Of a stretch of 64,000 nt of DNA, positions 3,301 through 39,287 are shown one piece after another. The first letter of the stretch is position 1, and every line of letters starts with the position of its first letter. The stretch lies in the NCBI GenBank assembly GCA_964036045.1, contig OZ038378.1, positions 165,540,001 to 165,604,000 on the forward strand, in the 5' to 3' direction. Source of the stretch: Eutreptiella sp. 'Long Island Sound 2002'. Lineage: Eukaryota > Protista > Euglenida. A program made the translations under genes and the position numbers. A model generated the notes under the pieces. It was not told the origin of the DNA, made no database searches, and saw nothing but the letters and a program-made list of their open reading frames with translations.

Positions 3301-5400
3301 AGAGGATGACGCCCGCCCCGCAGCTAAACCGGGAAGCCGAAGTGGGCATCAACCAGCAATGCCTGGCGACAGCAGCAGGTTTTGTCTTGCCTCGGGGGTT
3401 GAAGTGTTGAGACCACTGATGAGGATGGACTACACCTCGGCCTGACCTCATGCCGCCCGGTGCTCTTGGCCCTCAGTGGCATTGATTTGGGTCTTGAAAA
3501 TCAATGGCAGTAATGACACAAGGTCCCCATGGAGGGGGGTCACTTGGCAGAAAACAACCCCTCATGGCATGACTATTGGGACCACAGGTACAGTGAGCGG
3601 GGGGGGGGGGGGTGGCGTGAGGCCGTGGTGTTGGTTTGCTTGCCTTTGGCCTCTCGCCACTGTACATTCCGACCCTCTCTGGGTCCAAAGGTGTTTTGGT
3701 TGTGTCAACGGAGCCCCTGGATGACTTGTCCTGTTTGACTACTCCGGGGTCGGCTGTCCCGGAGACGGGCTGTTGCCCGTGCCATTGACCAGGTGCATCC
3801 AGATGCACACTCCGAGTCCATTCTGGGTTTGCCGACTCCAGCACTGACTTGTGTGCGCTGGGGTGTGCATCTGCAGGATCATTTTTGTGACATGGGCCTC
3901 TAACAACCACAATGATTCTTTCCCTTTTGTCCTTTCCTTCTCCTCCCTCTGCGCTCTGCGCCATTTTCGGCAAGCGCGGTCTGCCCTGCCCTGTTACCTC
4001 CCCTTGTGTTTCCCTTTCTTCCTGCCCAGTTTCCTCTGGGCTCTCCATGTTCGTCCTGTTCTGGGGTGTAAAAGGGCGGCGGGAGGACGTGATGCTGTAG
4101 GGAGGGGGAAGGGGAGGGGGAGGGGGGTCGTCGCGCCCTGTCCCCTCTTTCCCCTTGAGGAGGAAGATCCTGGCTCAAGGGGGCTCCTTTGTTGGTGGCA
4201 GCATACTTGGTGTTGCTGGTTTTGGCCACTTGCTTCTGCTGGCCCACATATCCCAGTCTGTCCTGGGCGTAGTTGCATGATGTTCGCTGGCTTGATGGCC
4301 TTAGCTGGCGCGGCGGTGGTAGACCATGCACGTAGTGCCCGCCGACAGACTACGGATTCGGGACCGGGGCTAGTTCCCCTTTGTATGAGTCCCCGCAGTC
4401 CGGGCGAGGGGCAAGTCCGCGGCCTCCCCCCCCCTACCCTGTCAAGTGTCTGTTGGTGCATCACCCAGGGCCCGCAGTGCCCCAGGCGTCTTTCTGGGCT
4501 GCCCGGGGCTGTTGTTGCGTCTGTGAGTGCGGTGTTGTTGCTGTGGTGTTGGTGTTGTGGTTGGTTTTGCTGCGGTTGTTGCTGGAGCGTAGCAGGGGGT
4601 GTCTATTCCAAGTGGTGTCAGCGTTGTGGTTGGTGATGTTGCCTCCTGTGGCACTGGCAACCAAACCAGTCCCAACATCCGAGTCCTGACGGGGCTGCGT
4701 CCGCCATCAGTGATCCTGTCCTCCAGTCTCTGGTTCACCTGTGGTTCAGTCGCCGCCAACATCAGTGCCCCATCACTCTACAGTCCTCTCCACCCCCACC
4801 TTGGGGGATGGGGTACAGGGGGGCAGCATTACAAGTGGATACTGGAACAGTTTCGCACTTGTGGGCAAGGGGCTCTGCGAGGCAAAGCACAAGCAAGACG
4901 AAGCGCTCACCACTAGGGAAGCAGACGTCCACAGGGCAAAAACAGCAGATTTAGAAAGAAGACTGACTGCATTCTGGCATTTTCAGTGTGAAACATAGTT
5001 TGTTCAACTCATTATCTGGGGTTTTGGACGGAGTAGGACACCAATGGCGATCGGTGGCGAACCGACGGCGGTTGGTTCGACGAAAGCTTTAGAAAACGCG
5101 GGAAAAAACGCAAAAAGGAACGCATTTCTTGACGCACCACCTCAGTCTGCGCGCATAGTGCAGGGCAGGCCCGCCAGTCCCAGGGGACTGTGCAGGAGCA
5201 AATGCACGGCAGGACCAGGACACACCTCGTTTGATACCAATTCATCGGATTGATCATTGGAGAACTCCAAGGACTCGCTGCCAACGAGGGGTTGCATTGG
5301 GGGACCGCAACCTCTGGGGAACGGGGTAGCAAAAAGACAACACAAATCTGCAAGAGACAAGCAGTGGGATCAGGGGCTACGACTGACGCCTGAGCCAAAG
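390..5400 (-). CDS. Candidate multi-exon gene for a low-complexity protein of unknown function; exon structure only partly resolved
   Basis: Protein-like minus-strand segments at about 390-570 (QVKGKVRERTKVVSRKVRERMQEQYVVKFFDKTG), about 760-1040, 1472/1511-1892 and probably 2700-3200, 4150-4700 and 5150-5400. They are separated by G/C-run-rich intron-like DNA. Phases could not be joined unambiguously. Confidence 0.35.
1472..1892 (-). CDS. Best-supported exon of the 0.4-5.4 kb gene (PE-repeat, basic region)
   Basis: Acceptor ...tttcgacacag|TCC at 1893/1892; open frame SSCDSSGPEQPSEPEPEPEPEPATESQLRRRIPSRTEIFTDAKKLVRKVREV...; candidate GT donors near 1511 (CCG|gtgcgc) or at 1471 (CAG|gtgcag). 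Confidence 0.5.
3608..3878. repeat. Dispersed repeat family (second copy at about 62665-62840)
   Basis: Shared core aacggagcccctggatgac...tcctgtttgactactccggggtcggctgtcccggagacgggctgttgcc at both loci. Confidence 0.75.
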
Positions 5401-20356: not shown

Positions 20357-20374
20357 TGCAAAAAACTGCAAAAA

Positions 20375-20394
20375 CAAAAAACAGACACTCAGAA
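20375..20394 (-). other. Euglenid spliced-leader (SL) relic in genomic DNA
   Basis: TTCTGAGTGTCTGTTTTTTG, ending 18 nt upstream of the ATG, compared with the Euglena-type SL as recalled (...TTTCTGAGTGTCTATTTTTTTTCG): 12-nt exact core plus T-run. Confidence 0.7.
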
Positions 20395-21187
20395 TTGTGC
20401 GGGACTACTCAAGGGGCGGGGGGCAATGATCGCAAGAATTGAAACCCTATGTGACTGTTGTTTCACCTAGCTTTTGGCCATGCTTCCGCAAGTTGCATGT
20501 AAATCTTATCATTGTTTCGAGGCTTGGGCCTGTTGCAGTTCTTAGGTTCGGTGGGCAAAGAATAGAAAGTAGAAAGTACTTGCTTCAACGGCTTGTAAGG
20601 TGCTGGGGGCTGGTGTGGGGTGCGGCATCTAGGTGTGGTGGGATTCAGCGGCCCGGGTTAGGTTGTCTGGGTTTTGGAGGGTGTCCAACATCTACTACAG
20701 TGGTACCACTTGGAATGAATGTATTGACTCGTCATGGTGCAAAGACAATGTGCATCAAAAAGAGTCCTAAAAAAAGCACGGTAAATTGAATAATTTGTGT
20801 GGCAGTGTTGGACAAAAAAAATACTAAATTGAAGCACCTTCTCAGGGCAAACTGGACCACACAGCTGTTTGGCCTGAAAAAATAACATTGAAGATACAGC
20901 AAAAAATGACCTAAAAACATGACTTTTTTTGTTAGAAGCGACTAATCTTGGACAATGAATATACATGACCGCATAAGCCTACATAAGCCTACATGCATCA
21001 CACAATCTTTTTCACTCCACTTAAGGAACAAGTGGATTTGTGGAACATTCTTACGTTTGGGAAGAGCATATGTTATGATTGCAAAATTTTGCAACGACAT
21101 TGTCACTCCCTCCACATTGAAGAGGGTCAGACTCCTACGAATTTACCCATAGACAGACAATTATCATGCTACTCATAAAATCTATCT
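20395..21187. repeat. 793-bp direct repeat, copy 2 (R2)
   Basis: Begins at the base adjacent to the SL relic and ends at a T10 run (21187-21196). Confidence 0.95.
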
Positions 21188-26751: not shown

Positions 26752-27560
26752 TATTCCCTGTACAAGAAGCTACAGCACAGGGTCACCGTCAAATTCGGCG
26801 ATCAGGTTTACAAAGCAGCCTTACACACTGGAGCCACGTTGTCTATCGTGGCCGGCAGACTGCTAAAACCAGCCAACATCCGGAAAACCAAAACAATGGC
26901 CATACGGGTTGGGGATGGCAAAACAATCCACTCCTTGGAAGGGTTTGACGTGACAGTGTGTCTTGGCGATGAAGAGGTAACCCAACACTGCAGGGTGCTG
27001 GATACCGATACCTTTGACATTGTCATTGGCACAGATTTTCTGCGCCGAAACCCCCAGGGGAAATTGTTGTCTTTGCAACATCCCTATGCCCTACACTGCG
27101 GCTTTGGCAGTGGCCTCTTCTCTGTCCCTCTGGAGCTGTCAGGACAAAATAAATCCGGTTTGCGTTACGTGAACCGTTCCCATCGAATTGAGAGCTATCA
27201 GCTTTTGCAACCAGTTCTTGGGAACGGAGTGGTCGCCCTGCAAGTAGACTTGAATGAAGTTCAGGTGCAATCGTTCGCAAATAATGAAAAGCATGTGATG
27301 CAACTCTACTGTTTGCAAAACCTCAACAATGCGTATCATTTTCACTGGAGATCAATGGGGTGGTGCTATGCTAATCCCCCATTCGGGTTCTACAACCGAA
27401 CACGTTTGCTGGATGCCACTATTGGACCGTATGGCTGTAGGAAGAACTGAACTTCCCGACGGCCCTATGTATGTTCGTGGAGATTCTCAGGAGACTATGC
27501 CTGCCCCTGAATGGCGTAGTTTCCTCACCATCGTCTCTGAATCCCGTAGCTGTGAGTGAC
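26752..27560 (+). pseudogene. Retroelement pol remnant: aspartic protease followed in frame by a Dam-like N6-adenine methyltransferase domain
   Basis: VYKAALHTGATLSIV (D to H relative to LDTGA in the 23410 copy) ... FDIVIGTDFL (protease C-terminal motif), then QVQSFANNEKHVMQLYCLQNLNNAYHFHWRSMGWCYANPPF; after a frameshift or deletion, CWMPLLDRMAVGRTELP...PAPEWRSFL. Confidence 0.7.
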
Positions 27561-29445
27561 CTAGACCAGGAAGTACTCAAAGAGGTGATGGCCGAAAATT
27601 GTGGCCTTACCCTACTGGATCTCAAGAAGAGGTCCGAATACCCTTTGGTCACCACTACGAGCGCTGAGAGCTACGATGAATTCGAGACTCCTGCTGTCTC
27701 CCCTGCATTGGATGATGCTGACAACCGCCTAAGCGAGATCGCCAGCGCAATACCACCGGTGAACCTGGAGATGTTGACCGTGAAACACATTTTTGTAGTT
27801 GAAAGTGTTGTTAGTTATCACGTTGTTGTTAAAATCACCCAAAATGCCCTTGTGAGGCACACCAACTCTTGGTGAAAGCATTCACAATCAGAGCATGATG
27901 ATCTCCAAGGATCGCCGAAATCAGACTTGTTTTTTTGGAACGATGCCTTTCATATGTCCTGATGACACGAAGGAGCAGAAAATGCAAGATATGTACATAA
28001 ACAATGCAAGCAAACATGTGCATGACACATATACTAAAAGATGGCATTCAAGTTATAGCAAAGAGACAAAAGAGACGACGTGCCGGCCTTGATCTTGTTG
28101 CCAAAGGGTCGTCCCAATCAGGATCCCGAGTTAGATCAGAACAAAAACTGAACAAGGTATTGAATCTTAAGCTCCAAACATGAAAAAATAGTGATTTGTG
28201 ATGACATAATGTCCTATTCCCGTGACTCCCCCCGACGCGTGGTGCCATTTCACCGATGCGTTTCGGATCCGCTTCAGGACGGCGTCAAGGGGGTGTCAGG
28301 AGCGCGTCAGAGGTACGTCGGGGAGGCGTCACGGGGTCAAACATATTTTGGAGGGACGTCGGGGGGGCATGAAGGGTGCGTCAAGAGGGTGTCAAGGCGG
28401 CGTTAAGAAATGGAGGCCTCAGGGAGGGGTCAGGATGCGTCAGGTTGCGTCAAGGGTGACGCAAAACCCGAATCTAATGTGTCTAATCTCATCCAATCTA
28501 ATCTCATCTAATCTCATGTGTCATTCATACTTGTTAGGGGGCGTCTTTGCACAGCGCGGGCACAGCGCCAATTGTTACGTCCCTTATCCTGGGAACACCC
28601 CTGAAACACACCAAAATTGTCACATTAGTATGAAAAGGTGATTCTGTGTATCCACTGCACTATATTCTCGTAAAAATAGTTTCAGTGAACCTTCAAATGA
28701 TAACAGGCAATACGCAGAGAAACAAACATCAGTATACTTTTAGCTTCACCGATGGTTTGATGAAGTCCTGCTGATCCGTGTAGAGTCTCCAGCAGCGTAT
28801 CTCTGACATTCCCACACTGGTTTCCATCGCCAAAGAGTGAGGCTATAGCATAAAGAACAATTATACATCACAAAAATATGGAACCAGTGGACAAAGAACA
28901 CTGCAGCCGAGGATCACATTTGTTCATGCGCGGCTGATGACAATATTTCCTGCGCGGCCCGTGGGAAAGAAACAACAGGCAGTCTGAAAGCATCACGGTA
29001 ATATATAGTCAGTATAGATTACAAGCAACCATCTACCAACAGAAGCATGCATGATCCATTCAAAAGAGCATGGGGTGCAGAATTCAGGACCCTGTGACCC
29101 GTGGCAAGCATCAGACTACAAAAGAAATCCCTCGTGTACCGGCAGGGGCTGTAGGGTGCGAAATTCAAGACCCTGGGGCCCATGGCTACTGGTAGTGGAA
29201 AACAGCCAACATTTCGCACAGCACCGGTGCGCCCCCTTTGTGTGCCAGGCAAATTATACCATGGCTACACTCTCTGTCAATACTGCCAGACAACTCTTTT
29301 GTTCTAGCCTGCTGCTGCTGCTGCCTCGCAGACTCTGAAGAGAAACTGCAAATTCAAACTCTGAGCGTGACTTCCAGCATCACTCCCGCCCCCTCTCCTC
29401 TCTCCAAGTCCCCCTTCGTGTTCCTCCTCCTTGCTCTCTCTTCTG

Positions 29446-30105
29446 CTAGCATGTGGTCCACTCGGGGCGTCTTCGACAACGCTGTGGACATTCCAGTGGT
29501 GACAAATACATCCCAGTAGGGACTCCCACACGAGCATCTCCGTCACGCTGCGATGGAAATGGTCGCCATTCAGTGTCATTGTACTGCCCACAGAGATACG
29601 AATCATGCGCCAAGCAGGACACATGCGGAAACAAGTGTTCCCTCAGAGCAGCTTGGTCTGAGCCTTCCTGTGTTGCAGGAGTCCAGATCAACTTTCGAAA
29701 CTGCTCCAAAAGGGTCCCTGTCGGCTGTCCTCTGTAGCCCCACATCCCACCGAGCATTTCAATAGTGTGCAGAACGTGGTCGCGCATTATGTGGCACTCA
29801 TAGCTCGTGTTGTACAACCACTCAATGACAGCATCGCGATCGCGGGCAATGAGATCATTGTCTGTGTCTCGCGACAGGAAAACATCAACTTCCTTGTCCA
29901 GAGCGGCCAAAAATATCCAACACATTTTGTTTGGTGGTATCGGAAACGGAACTTGTGTCATGTCCACAAGCTGCACATGGCGCAGATGCGAAACCACTGT
30001 GGCATTGTCTGTGTAGATGCGCAGCGCCCAGTCGCTGCCAAACAGACGCTTGACGTCCGCTGCGATTGAGGGCAGTCTACTGTAATATTTGAGATTGGAC
30101 CCGTA
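29446..30105 (-). CDS. C-terminal glycosyltransferase-like domain of the split gene
   Basis: YGSNLKYY...WALRIYTD...MCWIFLAALDKEVDVFLSRDTD...VIEWL...HIMRDHVLHTIEMLGGMWG...DQAAL...HDSYLC. This resembles the widespread uncharacterised 'KKVISFSLYG...MFWRF...SRDxD...HIMRDH...LGGMWG' family, but lacks its own N-terminal strand. Confidence 0.8.
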   Translation of the reverse strand, partial: YGSNLKYYSRLPSIAADVKRLFGSDWALRIYTDNATVVSHLRHVQLVDMTQVPFPIPPNKMCWIFLAALDKEVDVFLSRDTDNDLIARDRDAVIEWLYNTSYECHIMRDHVLHTIEMLGGMWGYRGQPTGTLLEQFRKLIWTPATQEGSDQAALREHLFPHVSCLAHDSYLCGQYNDTEWRPFPSQRDGDARVGVPTGMYLSPLECPQRCRRRPEWTTC

Positions 30106-31191
30106 TGCCAAATGCATCAGCAAACTGGTAGAAGTTACCAGAACAAGATGGGCATGAAGGTTTGGATATCCATGGGACTTTGCTTGGATGAGACCGCGCA
30201 AATTTATGGAAAGGGACTGCATCCCTATCAGGACAGCCTAGTTTGGGCGGCACGTTTGTGGCGTCATTTCTTCCCTGATGCTGAGCAAGTGGGATTGCTT
30301 GTCACTCTTGTCTCGGATGGCACCTCTGGTAAACATGGCAACCTTGTTGCCCAATTAAAGCAACAGAAAGTCGTCATCCGCTTCGTCCATCCTCATCCAC
30401 TCCTAGGCTGCGTAACGTCTTCGCAGTTGGTCCGCAGCTACGCTTTCAAGGCAAAACAGGTTCAGAAGCATGACATCGTGGTGACAGCGGATGTTGATGC
30501 GTGGCCAACCAGTGCACGTGTTTTGCAGCCTCTTTTTGAGCATCCCTCAGTGTTAGTTTGGATATGGCAGTACCAGTACTCTTTGGAATCTGGGTCTACG
30601 TTTCCCATGTCATTTATAGGGATGGCAGCTGAATTGTGGCGCACCATTCTGAGCACCCGCACGATGGCGGAATGGTTGGCCTATTTGAACGTTTCCTCAC
30701 ATACCTCTGCCGAAAGGATGTGGTATACAGACCAACGAATTGTCACCAATGCCATTTTGCTTAACAGATTATGTTACATCAGCCGCCAGATCTCAGAGGT
30801 CGTTCCTGTCCTTGCATGGAATGATCATGATGTGTGCTGGCATGGCCAAACCAAGCACCGCCATTCTGAGGATGAGCCATTCATTGATAACAAGACATGG
30901 GTGCATACACGCGTTGGCCGAGGCCCTGACTTTGTTTTGGCATTGGGACATCTCATAGAGAAGACGAGCCTAAACAAGAGCAGCATTCAGGGTGTTGAGT
31001 ACAAGAGGGAGAGAGATATAAGTGTTCCCACAAGAGCCAATCATTCAACTACCCAGAAACGCAACACCAGTGAGGAAGCGAACTTCATCAGTCCTCGCAC
31101 TCAATCCCTTTCTCAAGATGAGCTTGTGTTCTCACAGCTGCCTACACACCAACATACTGCGAGGGGAAAAAAGATTGTGTCTGTCTCTGTT
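30106..31191 (+). CDS. Inverted middle segment of the split gene: glycosyltransferase-like domain 1, linker and first strand of domain 2
   Basis: 362 open codons: VWISMGLC...YGKGLHPY...GCVTSSQLVR...DIVVTADVD (DxD)...TFPMSFIGM...WYTDQRIVT, ending RGKKIVSVSV, which is the strand missing from 29446-30105. Confidence 0.8.
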
Positions 31192-31251
31192 TATGATGCC
31201 AAGAGCAGCAGCATGCAGAGCAACACACGCGCAAAGCAAGTTCCTTGCCAT
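31192..31251 (-). CDS. N-terminal signal/anchor segment of the split gene
   Basis: MARNLLCACVALHAAALGII, preceded by pyrimidine-rich AG acceptor-like sites; joins in frame to 30106 when the segment is re-inverted. Confidence 0.7.
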
Positions 31252-34200
31252 TCCATTTGTAGATCAGCTGGAAGAAATGGACACTGATAAAAGCAGGCAC
31301 GACACACGGTCCCCGGGAGCAGTAGGGGAGGAAGGCTATGTGACATTACTGTAAGACTTTCAGCGACCTATGATCGGCGCTTTTTCCGGCCTTGGGCAGG
31401 ACTTTTCAGCAGCACTTTTTCTATTGTTTTTGCACTTATTTCAGTGGAACATCCTGTAAAATATAACTGAAATCTGTGTTATTGCGCGAGCAGCGGCAGG
31501 CAAAATGTCGCCGTCGCGGGCAATTTCTGGCGATCGGAGAATTTGATTTAAAGCGATTTTAGGCATTTTTTATATTGCTTTATTGTTTTTAAGCATAGGC
31601 GAAATGTAGGGCACTGTTCCCGCGCCGTTCCGCGGTGGTCACTGTTGACCAAAATGGGCCACCTAATTCATTTTCTCTGATTTTCCTGATTGATTTTTAC
31701 AAATCGATTCGTGGCCCATGTTGGGGCACAACACCCCCTTTTTCCATGTATAATATGGATTGGACTCGTAATCCCTGACGTCCCCCTGATGTCACCCTGA
31801 CGCCTTCCTGACGAATCCCTGACGCACCCCGCACCCCCCCTGACGACCCCCTGTCGGCCCCCGGACGTCTACCTGTTGACTCCCTGACGCTCCCCTGACG
31901 GCCCCCGGACGCCCCCCTAATTGCCCCCTAACGTCTACCTGTTGACTCCCTGACGCTCCCCTGACGTCCCCCGGAAGGCCCTCTAACAGCCCCCTGGCGC
32001 CTCACTGATGCCTACCTCACGCCCCCCGCCCTGACACCTACCTGACGCCCCCCTGATGCCCTGTTGTGCCCCCCCCCGCCCTAGATGCCCCCTTGAGGCC
32101 CAACTGATGCCCACCATGCAAATTCATTCATTTTCCCTCATATCTTAAAGTGCAACCTTATTAAACCGAAAAACCATGATGTGGCACAATCTTAGTATTT
32201 AAATTTTGCGCATTGTGAAAAAACAAACTTCCCATCAATGAAAAACAAAAGCCGTCCTCGTTGTATTTTGTTCTTGTTTAGCTCCCATGTCGTTTCTCTA
32301 CGTGGAACACATGCAATGAACAATATCACATTGCCACAAGTATTTCTTGCGTCTGCTCGTCAAGATGGCACTACAGCTTGCACTTACATGATGTTTCCGA
32401 TGTGGGTATACATCCTTCGCGTTTGCCGAATTCCGGCTCAGCATTGTGAATCGTGCCGGCGAAGAAGAATGCAAGTGCCATTTCTTTGGTGTACCCACCA
32501 GCGCCAGCACAATCTTCCTCAATGTCCACTGTCAAGAACTCGCCGCCCGCTGACAAAGAGCACCAGCTTGGCAAAGAGCACCACCTTGGACGTATAGAAG
32601 TCATCAAAAGGATTCTTGATAGATTGGACCTTCTCTAAAAATCAACAGTAATACAGCTAAGAAACAAGCAGATAGACACAAATAAATCCTATAAACCGGC
32701 AGCACTTAATTAGCCAAAAACATTGCTAAGCCTCAGCGGCAATAATCACAGAAACACATGTATGGAAAGATCTGTTGTGTCACTATGATGAGGCAATTGG
32801 ATGTGGTTTTGTCAAACTTGTCTGCATTTCATAGTGGTGCTGGCAAGGTGCGAATGCCTAGGACGGCTTGTGACCATGCTCATAGCTGTGGAAACGTCAC
32901 TTGTTTTTTGTGTTGACTCCATTTCCTGACTTTTCCCTCACTCCCTCCTGACGCCCATCCAAAATGTGCATAGACCCCTTGACACTCGCCTGACACTCCC
33001 CTGCAGCACTCCTGACGCCTCCCTGGCGCCTCTTTTACGCTTCCCTGACGTACTTGTAGCGAAAGTCATCAAGCACATTCTAATTGCTGCCATGCAGTCT
33101 AAGGACGGATTTCAACCATAAGGTTGGTATCTTGGTCCTTAATCACTTGGTAATACTGATCTCATGTGACTCATAATATCTATCTATGCATGTCCTATAG
33201 CTGCAGGTACCATACTCATGGATTTTGCAATGGCAGCTTTCATGCATTCACAAGATTTCACAACAGCAAGTTTTCTAGCCGTTGCGAGATTTTGCCATGG
33301 TAGCTTTCCTACAATTGTCAAATTTTGCTGCGATGGCAGCTTGCGTGCGATTGCACGGACTCCCAATGGCAACATTTATGCCATTGCAAGAAATTGCAAT
33401 GGCATGGCACAAAACTTGTTGTCGGACATTTCGCAATGGCTGGGATGCAGCCATTTCGTGATGGTAGCTTCCCTACAATTGAGAGATTTTGGAATGGCGT
33501 AGCCATACAGTTCAAGATTGGGCCTCTATGGTGCCTGCAAAGGGGTAGATTGTCCGTGGATGGGATCTCGCACTTGGTGGTGTTTTGGGAGTGGCTATAG
33601 TGGGATTTCCCACAAGGTGGGATCCCACTCCTCCCTGGGTCGTTGTGTATCATGTGTAGCTTTTTTTGTATTGCCGTGGTGTGTTGGCGGCCATGTATGA
33701 CGATGTCATCCTCCGGCATCCACTAGACTACAAACTTAGTTCAAAAGTGTTTGTACTGTTTATGCACAATTAGTGTGCCATCACTATGTAACACGCACAC
33801 CTCATTGGAGTTGCTGAAAAAGAAAAACCTGCTCACAGTGCGGACACCTAGATTATGTGTAATGTCTCTCTAGTGGCGGCACACACAAAAGCGTACATGT
33901 GTACATGCATGGGACTACATCCCCATCCTCGGGGGCCTCCTACCGAAGGACCAAACAATTGATACTTGTCTAGAAAGCAGACATGGTAACACCACTGTGT
34001 CATCCTAGCCGACCTCGTGATGACTCAACACCCCGTGGGGGTGGGCACTTAAGACGTGGCGGCCCACTCAAAAGTGTGAATCTGTGGGGGAAAACCTTCA
34101 TAACTCAATGGACAGGAGCATTTTCAGCCACGTGCCGCTCCAACAGCCACACGGGCTGAACTAATACAGAGTGTAACTCCTGTTTCAAAATCACTTCGGG

Positions 34201-34305
34201 GTCGTTGAACGTGATCACAACATCAAGGCACACATGTGTAGGTCTTGATGAATGCAAGCGTAGCCAAGTGCGCTTATTGCGCCTCCACCACGCGAAAATG
34301 AGGAT

Positions 34306-34930: not shown

Positions 34931-37900
34931 TCAATGTGGGGCACGGTCTCTATCGGCAACATGGCCCCACGACACGTGGGAGCCAAGCTTATAATACAAC
35001 CGTTCTCTGGCATGAGCTTGCAAAACTACAGATTGGGGGGACCAAGAATAACAGGCCCTGCTGACAGGATCAGCAGGGTTGAGAGCAGATTCTACATAAT
35101 AGAGGTGAATCACAGCGCCCATCCAACGGATTTTGTGTGCCAACCTACGGAGTATGCGCTGCTGAGGACAAAGGTCAGCATGCGCTCGTCCCCAAACGAG
35201 TTGCCCAATGGCCCCCATGTTATCGAGAATCAACTCAACATGAGGCTGGTCTATACCGCGAACCAAATCAAGGGCCGCCAGGGCCCCAAATAACTCGGCG
35301 GACTGTTGATTGTCCACCCAGACTGGGGCACGACGTATGGTGGGCCCGGCCCTGGTCCAGAGCCCCACCATATATCTACCTAGAAATTGGGGATCAGGTG
35401 CAGCATCAGCAAAAACACGGATCGGGGGGGTGGTAGAGGACAAAGCTGGCTCCCACCCTCGAAAAGAAGCTGCAATTGCCTCCAGCAAAGAGCGGACCAC
35501 AGAAAAGGGGGTGCGGTGTGAGGACATAGGTCCATGACGCAGCCATTGACGCGGCCCAGCAAGAAAGGCGCCCACAGATGCTCCAGGTCGCCCCAACCAA
35601 ACGATTTTTCCCAAAAGTCGTTGGAGGGATTTAAAGCGATATGGGCGAAGGGCCACGGTCAGCCAGCGGCTGACCACGTCAGCCACAAATGCTACAGAGG
35701 GTGCTATCCGGGGCCCGGAAAGATTAAGGGCTTTGCCCATCCACGTGACGTTCTTGGAAGGAGTAAAGTCACTTTTAGGACTGATCAAGTACCCTTGTTG
35801 TTGCAACGCATGAGCCGCAGACTGAGCCATGGACTGTACATCATCCCGGGGACCGACAAACAAAATATCATCCAAATACTGGATGATCAGAACTGAGGAC
35901 GGGGGGAGTGTCTCCAAAACGCGTGCTATTAGGTGTTGAACAAGCCCGGGGGCTTGATGCCACCCGAATGGTACCCTGACAAAGGCGTACCTGTCAGTGG
36001 CCGCCGCCACGCGTATACAGTTCAGCATGTCAGGCGGCAAATGTATAGACCAATAACAGTTTCGCAAATCAATCTTACAGGCGTACACATCACTGCAAAT
36101 GGATCTAAGAGAGGCCGCAAGACCCTCCAATGTAGGCAACCGAAACCTGCGGGCCTTAGAGGCGCAAGAGCGATTAAAATTGACCATATTTACAATCAAG
36201 GCAGCCTTTTCCGCCGATTTATATTTTACAAACACCTGGGCATTCGCTGGCTCATCCGTCGGGGCAAGAAGCCCGTCGTGAAAAAGGGCACGCAGCATAG
36301 CTCTCGCCTTAGGGCAATGTGTTGGCGGGCACTGCGGCGCCGAGCTGCCAGCTAAAGCAAACTGTGGATCTGCCCAGAGATCCCACAAATCACGGGGAAC
36401 ACGAACAGACCCCGCGGGACCAATGCCCTTACGGGCAACATCAATAGAAACATGGTCACGGGAGCCCAGGATAGGGGAGGAGGCAGAATCAGGCGGGCCT
36501 GCAGTGGCCAAATGGTGTAAAACAGACTCAGCCAAATCCGCGTCTCGCGCAATGGTCTGACGCATAGACGCCGGCCTATCATACACCCATTTGCAGACCT
36601 CTGACCACCAGAGGTGGACAAGATCACGCGTTTGCGGCAAAGGGACACGTTTATGAGAAGAAAACAGGGCAGCAAATTCATCGAGATGTTGATGCCAAGC
36701 GACGCCGCACTGAGCGCAAGTCTCCGGACGGGTGGGCTCCCGAAGGGCTACGTGAACGGAGCGCCGCACGTGCTCGGGTGCCGGCAAAGTGCTGTGTGGC
36801 GACACTGGGGCCTGTGCGGGCTTGAGCCGCGCCCGAAGTTTGCACCGGGGTTTGACGGGTACGCGGAACCGTCGACGAAGTCCGGTCTTGCGATCCACTG
36901 ACCCCGACAGAAGCATGTCGCCTGGCTGACTGGGGCGGCCGGCTGTCAGAGGGGGTGCATACTCGACGAACCGGGCGAGTGGTCCCCAATAACCGGGAGC
37001 GGGGTCGTGGGACAGGGGGCCTGGGGGCGTCATCGCTGTCGTCCCCGTCCATGGCGACGGGCGGGCATTCTGCGAGGGTACCCTGGACCAGGGCCAGCAG
37101 GTTTTCCGGCCATAATTGGAACGCCGCCGTAGGACGTAATTCCACCCGTCGGGTTCCACACGGCCACGGCAAATCGATGGGGAATTTGACGTTCCATGCC
37201 AATGGTGGACTGCTGTAGTACCGGGCTTGTCGCTCAGTGAGCCATCGACCCCAGACGGCAATGACGGTGAGGGCAGCGCCCGCCCATGCAAGAAGGGCGG
37301 CTCCCATGCGGCGCCAGGAGTGCCAGCCGGCTTCATGCGCCCCCGTACCCCAGAGCTGGGCGCGCATGGTAGACTGGAGGATTGCTGTACCCGCGGCAAC
37401 GGGCAGGAAGTCTGGGCGGCCGGCAATCGCTGGTGAGGAGACAAGACGCTTCCTCCAAGCCTCGCCCCAAGCTCCCATGGGCGCAGTGATCCAGCGGTTA
37501 GCGCCCTTGGAATGGTAGAATGACAGGCGTCGCTCAGTGCATAAGTCGGATTTCCTGATGGAGGCAACCTCGCTGACGCGCAGTAAGTGGCAGACTGACA
37601 GAACTGCGAGTCCAAGGGTAACAAAGGCGAGGTCGGTGTCGACATGTGCTGCCATATGGGCCAGCATGGCAGGGGTGCCCCACACGGGGGACGGTGCGGG
37701 GTGTTCGTAAATACGGTCGGCTCCCGCAGACATGGCCCAGTGGATGGGGGAAACAGTGGGGGGGATGAGGGTGATCTTCTCGCATAGTCGGACCGCACTA
37801 AGTAATCCGCGAATGATGACTGATTTGCGGCCCTGTGCTGCGAGTAGTCGAATGTGTTGTGCCAGCACCTGGGCTCTGGTGAATTCAGGGTATTTAGTCG

Positions 37901-38287
37901 CTGTGACAGAAAGACCTCTGAGCAGCCCTGCCCAAGAATCAACGGTGCTGGGTGCCCAACGTCCCAAGGCAAGGGCCTGATCCGAGGCATAGGGGTCCCG
38001 AGCCCGAGCGTCAAGCAGTCTGGTGCTGAGAAAGCGGAGCTCATCAGCAGTGCCCCCGGATTGAGCGCCGGGTTGTACCACACCCCCGGGGGCAGTTCGG
38101 GGTGTGGAAGCGGGGCGTTCATCACCCACACGGGGGCCCCGGATCGCCATGGGGCCCGGTAGACAGGGAGCGAACAGATCCAGGGGAAGTGGGTGCCGCA
38201 GGCTGAGCCCCTGGCGGGGCAGGAGGATTCGGGTCGGGCGGGGGGCAGCCTTGCCAGCTCCAGTGCATTTTTGAGCACCGGCTGCAT
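34931..38287 (-). CDS. Reverse transcriptase-RNase H ORF of the YR retrotransposon
   Basis: KIDLRNCYW, VPFGWHQAP, QYLDDILF, WMG; RNase H residues in VFADAA...QQSAELFGAL...LILDN...NPADPVSR. The RT/RH part is the C-terminal about 560 aa; the N-terminal half overlaps the YR ORF. Confidence 0.93.
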   Translation of the reverse strand: MQPVLKNALELARLPPARPESSCPARGSACGTHFPWICSLPVYRAPWRSGAPVWVMNAPLPHPELPPGVWYNPALNPGALLMSSAFSAPDCLTLGLGTPMPRIRPLPWDVGHPAPLILGQGCSEVFLSQRLNTLNSPEPRCWHNTFDYSQHRAANQSSFADYLVRSDYARRSPSSPPLFPPSTGPCLREPTVFTNTPHRPPCGAPLPCWPIWQHMSTPTSPLLPLDSQFCQSATYCASARLPPSGNPTYALSDACHSTIPRALTAGSLRPWELGARLGGSVLSPHQRLPAAQTSCPLPRVQQSSSLPCAPSSGVRGRMKPAGTPGAAWEPPFLHGRALPSPSLPSGVDGSLSDKPGTTAVHHWHGTSNSPSICRGRVEPDGWNYVLRRRSNYGRKTCWPWSRVPSQNARPSPWTGTTAMTPPGPLSHDPAPGYWGPLARFVEYAPPLTAGRPSQPGDMLLSGSVDRKTGLRRRFRVPVKPRCKLRARLKPAQAPVSPHSTLPAPEHVRRSVHVALREPTRPETCAQCGVAWHQHLDEFAALFSSHKRVPLPQTRDLVHLWWSEVCKWVYDRPASMRQTIARDADLAESVLHHLATAGPPDSASSPILGSRDHVSIDVARKGIGPAGSVRVPRDLWDLWADPQFALAGSSAPQCPPTHCPKARAMLRALFHDGLLAPTDEPANAQVFVKYKSAEKAALIVNMVNFNRSCASKARRFRLPTLEGLAASLRSICSDVYACKIDLRNCYWSIHLPPDMLNCIRVAAATDRYAFVRVPFGWHQAPGLVQHLIARVLETLPPSSVLIIQYLDDILFVGPRDDVQSMAQSAAHALQQQGYLISPKSDFTPSKNVTWMGKALNLSGPRIAPSVAFVADVVSRWLTVALRPYRFKSLQRLLGKIVWLGRPGASVGAFLAGPRQWLRHGPMSSHRTPFSVVRSLLEAIAASFRGWEPALSSTTPPIRVFADAAPDPQFLGRYMVGLWTRAGPTIRRAPVWVDNQQSAELFGALAALDLVRGIDQPHVELILDNMGAIGQLVWGRAHADLCPQQRILRRLAHKIRWMGAVIHLYYVESALNPADPVSRACYSWSPQSVVLQAHARERLYYKLGSHVSWGHVADRDRAPH

Positions 38288-38741
38288 GGGTATGGCGGGG
38301 GTCCCGACGCATCATAGGTTCGTCCGGTCGAATAAGCTGTATAGAGCGTTTGGGACCCAATCTGCGTGAACCCTCCACGTCGAGTCGGAGTGGGAACTGG
38401 CAACGGGGCAGACTGAGACAGAGAGGGGCCGGCAGTAGACGGTGCCTGAGACGCGAAAGTGGGGGCAGGCGGGGGCTGAGAAGGGTGCGACACCGGGGCA
38501 GCCGTCGCACAGTCCCGCGCCCAATGACCATGAAGTCCGCATCGGAAACATGGACCCGGCGGGCCACTAGGCGGTACAAACGACCCAGGGACCGCCGTGG
38601 ATCGCCCTGGGCTTGCGTGGGACTGACTCTCCGCCGTACGATACAGTGCGCGCCATACATCACGGGCCAACGTCTGTCCCGCACGCGCCAGGACAGCCGG
38701 GTCAGACTTAATGAAGCGCAGCAAGGCCTGAGAAACGTCAC
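36678..38741 (-). CDS. Tyrosine recombinase ORF (YR domain at about 37210-37975; true start uncertain)
   Basis: APSTVDSW (SAM-like N-terminal helix), LLRVSE (Arg), HSKG (Lys), HSWRR (HxxR), WGRW, RYY (Tyr nucleophile). Confidence 0.9.
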   Translation of the reverse strand: MTFLRPCCASLSLTRLSWRVRDRRWPVMYGAHCIVRRRVSPTQAQGDPRRSLGRLYRLVARRVHVSDADFMVIGRGTVRRLPRCRTLLSPRLPPLSRLRHRLLPAPLCLSLPRCQFPLRLDVEGSRRLGPKRSIQLIRPDEPMMRRDPRHTHAAGAQKCTGAGKAAPRPTRILLPRQGLSLRHPLPLDLFAPCLPGPMAIRGPRVGDERPASTPRTAPGGVVQPGAQSGGTADELRFLSTRLLDARARDPYASDQALALGRWAPSTVDSWAGLLRGLSVTATKYPEFTRAQVLAQHIRLLAAQGRKSVIIRGLLSAVRLCEKITLIPPTVSPIHWAMSAGADRIYEHPAPSPVWGTPAMLAHMAAHVDTDLAFVTLGLAVLSVCHLLRVSEVASIRKSDLCTERRLSFYHSKGANRWITAPMGAWGEAWRKRLVSSPAIAGRPDFLPVAAGTAILQSTMRAQLWGTGAHEAGWHSWRRMGAALLAWAGAALTVIAVWGRWLTERQARYYSSPPLAWNVKFPIDLPWPCGTRRVELRPTAAFQLWPENLLALVQGTLAECPPVAMDGDDSDDAPRPPVPRPRSRLLGTTRPVRRVCTPSDSRPPQSARRHASVGVSGSQDRTSSTVPRTRQTPVQTSGAAQARTGPSVATQHFAGTRARAALRSRSPSGAHPSGDLRSVRRRLASTSR

Positions 38742-39252
38742 GTTGCCATACCCAAGGTAACTTGGAGTCCACCAGCTTCAGCAAGGCAGCGTGGTCAAGC
38801 ATGGGCACCGTAGGCCCACGGAGCTCCTGCAGACGGGCCTCGCACTCATCGATTTGCTGCTGCAGCGAAGCCTCCGTAGCAGAAGCGTCAGTATGCTGTG
38901 AGGCTGCCGGCGACTCTCTCGGACGCTCAGTCCAATCGCCAGCGGTAACATCCAAAAAATAGTCAGTGGCAGTTTCGAAGAGAGCGAGCAGGAGTAATGC
39001 TTCATGCTGCTCAAGATCAGGGGCTGCCCATTTCGTAAGCAGATCAACACCCAGAAGGTCGAGACCATCCAATAGAAGTCGGGCATGAAAACGGGCAGCA
39101 ATAGCACCCCTCTCCTCAGCTGAGAGGAACGCCACAGCAGAAGTAGACGGCCCATCGCGCCATTGCCTCCAGCGTTCATAAGGCACTGTGTCCGCTGGGG
39201 GCATGTCAGAGTCGACGGCGAATAGAATCTTCCGCTTTTTGGGATCCGGCAT
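38122..39252 (-). CDS. Gag-like ORF with zinc knuckles
   Basis: Coiled-coil LQQQIDECEARLQEL, CFRCGLHGHWARDC (CX2CX4HX4C) and a second variant CSRCSKMHWSWQGC; ATG about 35 nt inside A1. Confidence 0.85.
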   Translation of the reverse strand: MPDPKKRKILFAVDSDMPPADTVPYERWRQWRDGPSTSAVAFLSAEERGAIAARFHARLLLDGLDLLGVDLLTKWAAPDLEQHEALLLLALFETATDYFLDVTAGDWTERPRESPAASQHTDASATEASLQQQIDECEARLQELRGPTVPMLDHAALLKLVDSKLPWVWQRDVSQALLRFIKSDPAVLARAGQTLARDVWRALYRTAESQSHASPGRSTAVPGSFVPPSGPPGPCFRCGLHGHWARDCATAAPVSHPSQPPPAPTFASQAPSTAGPSLSQSAPLPVPTPTRRGGFTQIGSQTLYTAYSTGRTYDASGPPPYPCSRCSKMHWSWQGCPPPDPNPPAPPGAQPAAPTSPGSVRSLSTGPHGDPGPPCG

Positions 39253-39287
39253 TGTCAAAAGGAATAGACGAGGAAAGCGAAGACAAA

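Follow-up and report, generated by a model that had tools for sequence, protein, structure and literature searches.

At this locus of the window, by which we mean the whole stretch of 64 000 nt that was analysed, the list of open reading frames (ORFs) contains two that overlap head to head as assembled, one on the plus strand (30112-31287, 391 amino acids) and one on the minus strand (29446-30222, 258 amino acids). A preliminary description of this DNA had proposed that both are parts of a single gene split by an internal inversion. We rebuilt the gene from the window by flipping 30106-31191, and the recomputed frame is correct as described: piece A (31251-31192, minus strand, 20 codons), piece B (30106-31191, plus strand, 362 codons) and piece C (30105-29446, minus strand, 219 codons plus TAG) make up an open frame of 601 codons, free of internal stops. 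A tblastn search of the window found no paralogue of the gene inside it.

Read in the original orientation, the 5′ coding flank with its hydrophobic signal anchor occupies 31194-31258 on the minus strand, as placed from the ORF list and by comparison with an uninverted copy on another contig (L003). The inverted segment itself (30106-31191, plus strand) is 1086 nt long and codes for a stem, a first predicted GT-A domain (GT8-like, with a DVD motif), a disordered linker and then KKIVSVSV, the first eight residues of the second domain. The rest of the second predicted GT-A domain, through the TAG, remains in its original orientation (29446-30103, minus strand) and carries the motifs SRDTDND and MRDH...GGMWG. 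A TA dinucleotide lies at each breakpoint, as had been noted, at 30104-30105 on the left and at 31192-31193 on the right, the two bordering the inverted segment. The second join of the flipped sequence was also said to rebuild a family motif, and KKIVSVSV/YGSNLKYY indeed corresponds to the conserved beginning of the family of C (P0152-P0155), matching the homologues P0154 (KKIISVSVFGHNEKYY) and P0152 (VIAVSVYGKNRKYY). Elsewhere in the window, a relic of the Euglena spliced leader is found on the minus strand near 20370-20395, and the dinoflagellate spliced leader is absent from the window. The relic counts in favour of Euglena gracilis as the source, the organism being a euglenid.

The encoded product is a predicted type II membrane protein, made up of a signal anchor followed by two GT-A domains, the first of them GT8-like, with a linker in between. 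Its earlier designation as a double glycosyltransferase holds at the level of fold and motif, and does not extend to a Pfam model for either domain. Specifically, Pfam searches of the three pieces gave no family at E-values up to 1, no curated glycosyltransferase models were found by Pfam in the homologues, and sequence-profile searches of the PDB came back empty for both domains. The structural model of the B domain has a pLDDT of 81, with a disordered linker in its last 70 residues, and its Foldseek matches are to GT8-type GT-A enzymes, namely LgtC (E = 1.8e-6) and also LARGE1, UGGT and glycogenin. Within the B motif TADVDAWP, D129 is invariant and D123 almost invariant. The domain has 215 relatives among 1.84 billion representative proteins, mostly of 300-370 amino acids with about 30-100 residues ahead of the B domain, and several of them also carry a fused FkbM methyltransferase domain. 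The C model (pLDDT 86) gives weak GT-A matches, with a Foldseek probability of 0.98 and an E-value of only 3e-3, and TM scores of 0.42-0.47 to PBCV-1 A64R and mannosylglycerate synthase. Residues R79-D80-x-D82 (SRDTD) and M107-R108-D109 are invariant in the C family, and H110 is nearly invariant. Relatives of C are mostly 210-340 amino acids long and apparently comprise the C domain alone, with an N-terminal stretch that is hydrophobic or of low complexity in P0152-P0154; the family is frequent in viral metagenome clusters, and rotifer and crustacean records contain it as well. As modelled, both domains are GT-A folds with a DxD-type motif.

Both domains are also present in a single chain in P0006, in the order C, B, FkbM. 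The possibility that B followed by C forms a general operon-like pair was rejected, as the genes adjoining the stand-alone B homologues P0002 and P0003 encode no C domain. The closest familiar architecture is that of LARGE1 (GT8 plus GT49), likewise a type II membrane protein with tandem GT-A domains and a DxD-type motif in each, and the best structural matches of the first domain include LARGE1 as well as LgtC. Unlike LARGE1, the protein has no membership at the sequence level, and its second domain comes from an unnamed family; the likeness is one of predicted fold. In this way the locus brings to notice two unnamed GT-A families, one of which is often fused to FkbM methyltransferases.

A protein search with piece C identified P0151, which is 90% identical to it and is encoded on the ENA contig ctg8778_38x_l (L003). 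The window's own ORF (P0001) is encoded on ctg9238_31x_l of the same assembly, ERZ25074135, and ctg9238 is 100% identical to window positions 27148-34287. Both are long contigs from the assembly of one sample, with coverage of 38x for ctg8778 and 31x for ctg9238, and theirs are the only two near-identical copies of the gene among 5.8 billion proteins. On ctg8778 the three gene blocks are collinear and uninverted: window 31193-32492 corresponds to L003 4807-3506 (92.3% identity), window 30105-31193 to L003 4806-5894 (96.9%) and window 29374-30105 to L003 6621-5893 (95.9%). The frame restored by flipping the window is not a product of chance, because a natural collinear copy exists. Hereafter, W denotes the inverted copy of the window and U the copy with the ancestral, uninverted order.

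Evidence from reads was taken from Logan contigs of four public runs placed on window positions 28900-31750, three of them DNA (X1, X2 and X3) and one RNA (X7). Run identities are coded; X1-X3 represent two studies and two organism labels, and the degree to which their strains are independent is uncertain. The right junction of W is bridged with 0 differences in all three DNA runs, by a contig covering 31136-31445 at a depth of 50.8 in X1, by one covering 31136-31468 at a depth of 6.8 in X2, and at a depth of 43.9 in X3. Its left junction (30105/30106) is attested solely through bin depth and a lack of loose ends, and not by the listed contig pieces. The U arrangement appears in the same runs as strand-changing joints: 30107>31193 at depths of 44 (X1), 4.4 (X2) and 48.9 (X3), and 30105>31191, also given as 30103>31193, at 3.7 (X2) and 42 (X3). 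Junction depths for W and U are thus 50.8 vs 44 in X1, 6.8 vs 4.4 in X2 and 43.9 vs 48.9 in X3, with a left-flank depth in X1 of 67 vs 28 that is no clean 1:1.

These data bear directly on the suggestion that the inverted form is an assembly or amplification chimera absent from cells. Mis-oriented long reads can yield exact in-place inversions, and L004 is the window's own source assembly and hence lends no independent support. Against a chimera stand the error-free contigs across the right junction of W, which derive from short reads of three runs and two studies at depths of up to 50.8, and the SNPs at other sites by which X3 differs from the window, so that X3 is not simply the same data. 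We regard a chimera as extremely improbable. The inversion in W is real.

A contig of the uninverted form is also present in X7, an estuary metatranscriptome. Its record 30, a contig of 420 nt, covers 30428 down to 30105 and passes straight on to 31195-31280, which is the first join of the uninverted order. X7 has depth over genic bins and zero depth over the adjacent non-genic bins, which suggests that the uninverted form is transcribed.

Comparison of the junction letters shows that the flip is not base-exact, as had been claimed when no base was thought to be gained or lost. In coding orientation, the first join of L003 reads GGGCATCA/TGCGAAATG (GGCATCA/TGC) with no TA, and the second reads CTGTT-TA-CGGGTCC with a single TA. 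The joints 30107>31193 and 30105>31195 in the run contigs give the same letters. The corresponding junctions of the window read GGCATCA-TA-AACAG and TTTGGCA-TA-CGGG. Consequently the order is flank, segment, TA, flank in U and flank, TA, reversed segment, TA, flank in W; the left TA has its match in the uninverted copy (L003 CTGTTTACGGG), there is no TA at the matching right join, and W carries one extra TA. U in turn carries 2 nt more in a GT run near 31220-31222, read as TC in X1-X3 and as AC in X7, with an equivalent change in L003.

The flipped window is in frame from ATG 31251 because these two 2-nt differences cancel. As a result, residues 11-20 of the flipped 601-amino-acid protein (ALHAAALGII) are in a frame that the natural copy does not use; at this site the natural copy has (K/M/L)LCMLLL(W/L)AS. 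The start of W that is in frame with the ancestral order is ATG 31258, reading MEWQGTCFARVLLCMLLLLAS, whereas the earlier reading used ATG 31251. L003 has ATT at the position of ATG 31258, and its N-terminal part reads MARNLLCACVKLCMLLLWAS, followed by CEMHQQ. In both copies the same hydrophobic anchor results, by way of a compensated frameshift. The case also carries a caution, in that a seemingly base-exact restoration of frame by inversion can come from compensating 2-nt differences.

The orientation of the segment is tied to the haplotype of its flanks, and neither form is attached to any flank except its own diverged one, whether in X1-X3 or in the two assembly contigs. Over 31193-31468, for example, the X2 contig across the U junction shows 17 mismatches and 9 gaps, against none in the W contig. 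On the left side U carries the variants 30028 C>T, 30054 C>G and 30071 G>C, and these three, together with a 3-nt deletion at 29508 and a 7-nt insertion at 31273, are all found in L003. No contig of X1-X3 combines W flanks with the uninverted segment or shows the reverse combination, with the qualification that Logan contigs drop rare variants, so that flipped molecules would go undetected if they were a minority on one haplotype or the other.

Flank linkage of this kind is at odds with the proposal that the locus is a programmed, reversible ON/OFF switch, in which a tyrosine recombinase encoded nearby would invert part of the gene of a surface-glycan enzyme. Such a switch would account for the presence of both orientations at roughly equal depth in every DNA sample examined, and for a segment interior that is nearly identical between the forms in X1 and X2. 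However, recombinant junction contigs were not seen, the TA difference between the forms amounts to a non-conservative exchange, and the form that would be 'ON' contains a stop codon. Inverted repeats at the breakpoints are at chance level, in line with the preliminary description, which had noted none flanking the segment: the longest match between the two 120-nt neighbourhoods is 6 nt, a length attained in 92% of shuffles, and the repeat listing of the window contains no inverted pair flanking the segment. The nearest large ORFs (34931-38287 and 38122-39258) match RVT_1 and a gag zinc knuckle in Pfam and, by these matches, belong to a putative retrotransposon; no integrase or recombinase domain was found by Pfam in the neighbouring ORFs. 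The flank linkage, the TA duplication and the lack of an inverted repeat above chance speak against a conservative reversible switch, and a programmed one seems to us very improbable. The bacterial switches Hin/Gin, FimB/FimE and the Bacteroides invertons resemble this locus in having both orientations within a sample, one of which breaks a glycan-related gene. They differ from it in that here flanking inverted repeats are lacking, the TA differs, orientation is fixed for each haplotype, Pfam found no recombinase domain in the neighbouring ORFs and the host is a eukaryote.

The event had also been called either very recent or reversible. The inversion is common to samples that differ in SNPs and therefore is not brand new. 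The claim that the inverted form is a null allele is supported for W, with the corrections that the allele is not new and that the other copy is disabled as well. Specifically, 30028 C>T on the plus strand converts the Trp codon 408 (TGG, 30028-30030, minus strand) into TGA in U. The TGA is present on the U contigs of all three DNA runs, with variant depths of 28.5/115.3 in X1, 3.7/13.6 in X2 and 42/61.1 in X3, and in L003, which is one frame of 600 codons with this single TGA. Trp 408 is conserved in the closest family members. The nuclear code of Euglena is the standard one, and the alternative that TGA is read as Trp was rejected on this ground and because the gene ends in TAG. No intact copy of the gene was seen in X1-X3 or in the two assembly contigs.

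W and L003 are separated by 15 synonymous and 43 non-synonymous differences, for a dN/dS of 0.81 overall, 0.90 in B and 0.71 in C from only 58 substitutions. Differences in the C domain were polarised by eye against P0152-P0155 and alignment A1. The majority of changes at conserved sites of this domain fall in L003 (P12R, V18L, W26stop, L77P, R108C, R181Q and P196L), and W has few (R64I and E147K). This distribution, drawn from few sites, would fit an order of events in which U lost its second domain first and W was whole until the inversion, which would have made W a null allele. In all probability neither copy yields a complete two-domain enzyme, and the gene is decaying. In this presumably asexual alga the two copies were put out of action by independent lesions, W by an inversion and U by a nonsense codon. 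What the locus offers is a heritable micro-inversion in a gene being lost, and not a eukaryotic phase-variation switch.

Contigs ctg8778 and ctg9238 are collinear over window positions 29109-33060 (about 4 kb), and beyond this, in the 10 kb of flank compared, only transposon copies match. The two co-resident copies are most likely two haplotypes. Alternatively, the two forms could be duplicated or homeologous loci, in which case the inversion would be fixed in one paralogue and the nonsense mutation would belong to the other. This would agree with the end of collinearity between L005 and the window after about 4 kb, where the farther matches are transposon copies at other places, with flanks that are 4-8% diverged and have kilobase-scale indels, and with the 16.9% of BUSCOs that are duplicated in the published Euglena gracilis assembly (PMC11252322). 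Paralogy is made unlikely, in our estimate, by the similar coverage of the contigs (31x and 38x) and junction depths near 1:1, by the occurrence of just two near-identical copies among all proteins searched, and by the fact that transposon indels between haplotypes could shift the homologous flank past the 10 kb compared. Neither the E. gracilis assembly paper (PMC11252322) nor the giant endogenous viral element paper mentions heterozygosity, inversions or this gene.

Taken as a whole, the locus is best explained as a two-break inversion allele of a decaying, intronless gene of 601 codons that is present in two co-resident copies, and we consider this explanation highly probable. The event is ordinary in kind, and its junction anatomy is neat. 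With the ancestral order reconstructed from the window's own letters, the first breakpoint falls 1-2 nt from the centre of TTGGCAT-C-ATGCCAA, a quasi-palindrome with a perfect stem of 7 nt and arms that match at 15/18 positions. Among sampled window positions, 0.5% have a perfect stem of at least 7 nt within 3 nt and 0.03% have arm matches as good as 15/18, and the one at the breakpoint is the only such site in the gene region. The palindrome is imperfect in L003, and the argument from it is post hoc. After the inversion its arms lie at two different junctions as a direct repeat of ATGCCAA (repeat family D16), the right arm at 30105-30111 and the reverse complement of the left arm TTGGCAT at 31196-31202, both on the plus strand.

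In the proposed course of events, one break would have occurred at the tip of this short quasi-palindrome, just past the signal anchor, and the other, with a 2-nt stagger, at the TA in the first strand of the second domain. Fill-in of the stagger would leave a TA on both sides of the 1086-nt segment, which would then have been rejoined backwards in a one-off repair of two breaks with no site-specific recombination. The rearrangement cuts the first domain off from the promoter and anchor on one side and from the second domain on the other, which would leave W null. The base-level junctions, with their TA duplication and palindrome tip, inform how such breaks are repaired.

Two other origins of the TA were considered and rejected. 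A Tc1/mariner-type element would be suggested by the TA, and yet the ends of the segment show no similarity by eye and the repeat listing contains no terminal inverted repeat pair; P-nucleotide addition from off-centre opening of a hairpin would give TG or CG and not TA. Replicative template switching of the FoSTeS/MMBIR type, primed at microhomology, would be another origin of the same allele and could draw on the 2-nt TA microhomology at the junctions and on the quasi-palindrome at one breakpoint, which could stall a fork. For a clean, reciprocal inversion in which no letters were inserted or lost beyond the 2-nt duplication, however, one blunt and one staggered break are simpler, and annealing at the palindrome arms would be expected to duplicate the flank as a fold-back, of which there is no sign. 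We rank template switching below two breaks with end joining and think it rather unlikely.

Simple inversion alleles that arise through two breaks followed by end joining, and bear short duplications from staggered breaks, are described in Drosophila. W shares with such alleles its reciprocal junctions (the left one by bin depth), a small duplication flanking the segment, breakpoints free of transposons or long repeats, and inheritance of the allele with its haplotype. It differs from them in that the segment is 1.09 kb and lies within one gene, the duplication is just 2 nt, and the euglenid host is believed to be asexual, with both copies persisting in each of the three DNA runs. Cruciform or hairpin tips are also known as break sites, as at the palindromic AT-rich repeats in human translocations. 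Here, too, one breakpoint falls within 1-2 nt of the midpoint of an inverted repeat whose arms end up at two different junctions. Unlike those examples, the palindrome at this locus is tiny and lies in coding sequence, and a role for it would follow from its position alone.

A broader reading is that the inversion exemplifies a genome-wide habit, in which small in-place inversions (0.2-8 kb) are frequent, short palindromic junction letters (TA here) result from a particular staggered-break or hairpin-processing repair, and gene conversion confined to the segment keeps the copies alike. We consider this doubtful; if true, in-place inversion would be an important way in which genes and transposons decay in euglenids, and one that has not been described so far. 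At this locus the letters of the contigs look like the result of gene conversion between the two copies, limited to the inverted segment. The interior of the segment is assembled in X1 and X2 as one contig at the summed depth, which departs from the window at 0-1 site; L003 and the window differ at about 28 sites inside the segment; and sites near the junctions (30109, 30768 and 31166) still branch in the run contigs.

Between positions 30110 and 31165, inside the inverted segment of the two-domain GT-A gene, the gene copies are nearly identical in the public DNA runs X1 and X2. In the assembly, approximately 28 sites in the interior of the segment differ between the copies. The sites immediately beside the inversion junctions remain heterozygous. 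This distribution looks like the result of gene conversion restricted to the inverted segment.

The translation starts of the two copies also differ. In the window (31220-31258) and in the corresponding region (4745-4790) of L003, the contig sequence that carries the uninverted copy and its flanks, the start ATGs are located 7 nt apart, and a GT run contains a 2 nt indel between the copies. A compensated frameshift between them yields unlike cytosolic tails with the same hydrophobic anchor. Two stretches flanking the uninverted copy, of 3.35 kb (L003 156-3505) and 1.04 kb (L003 6622-7659), lack a counterpart in the window and probably represent transposon insertions not shared by the gene copies.

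Directly upstream of the 5′ flank of the gene is a degenerate tandem array of approximately 30 units of 11 nt (CCCCTGACGnn, 31760-32112). A retrotransposon occupies 34931-39258 on the minus strand, where an 1118-amino-acid ORF matches reverse transcriptase and the ORF upstream of it encodes a gag zinc knuckle. The preliminary description had claimed a tyrosine recombinase, a domain that is absent from the Pfam results for this retrotransposon.

The short element at 28996-29187 has a depth of approximately 98 000 in the DNA runs, compared with 90-180 around it (an approximately 1000-fold excess), and exhibits many variant joints. It includes two 33 nt direct repeats (29073-29105 and 29154-29186), is also covered by the metatranscriptome RNA run, and probably represents a short repeat of very high copy number. 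On the minus strand, the genomic DNA contains a spliced-leader-like relic (20370-20395) in which a T-rich run comes after TTCTGAGTGTCTG.

No Pfam model exists for the family of the first GT-A domain (B) or of the second (C), both of which are unnamed. Among their relatives, an FkbM-type methyltransferase domain is repeatedly fused to a B-type domain (P0006, P0009, P0078 and P0131), and P0006 additionally carries a C-type domain ahead of the B-type domain.
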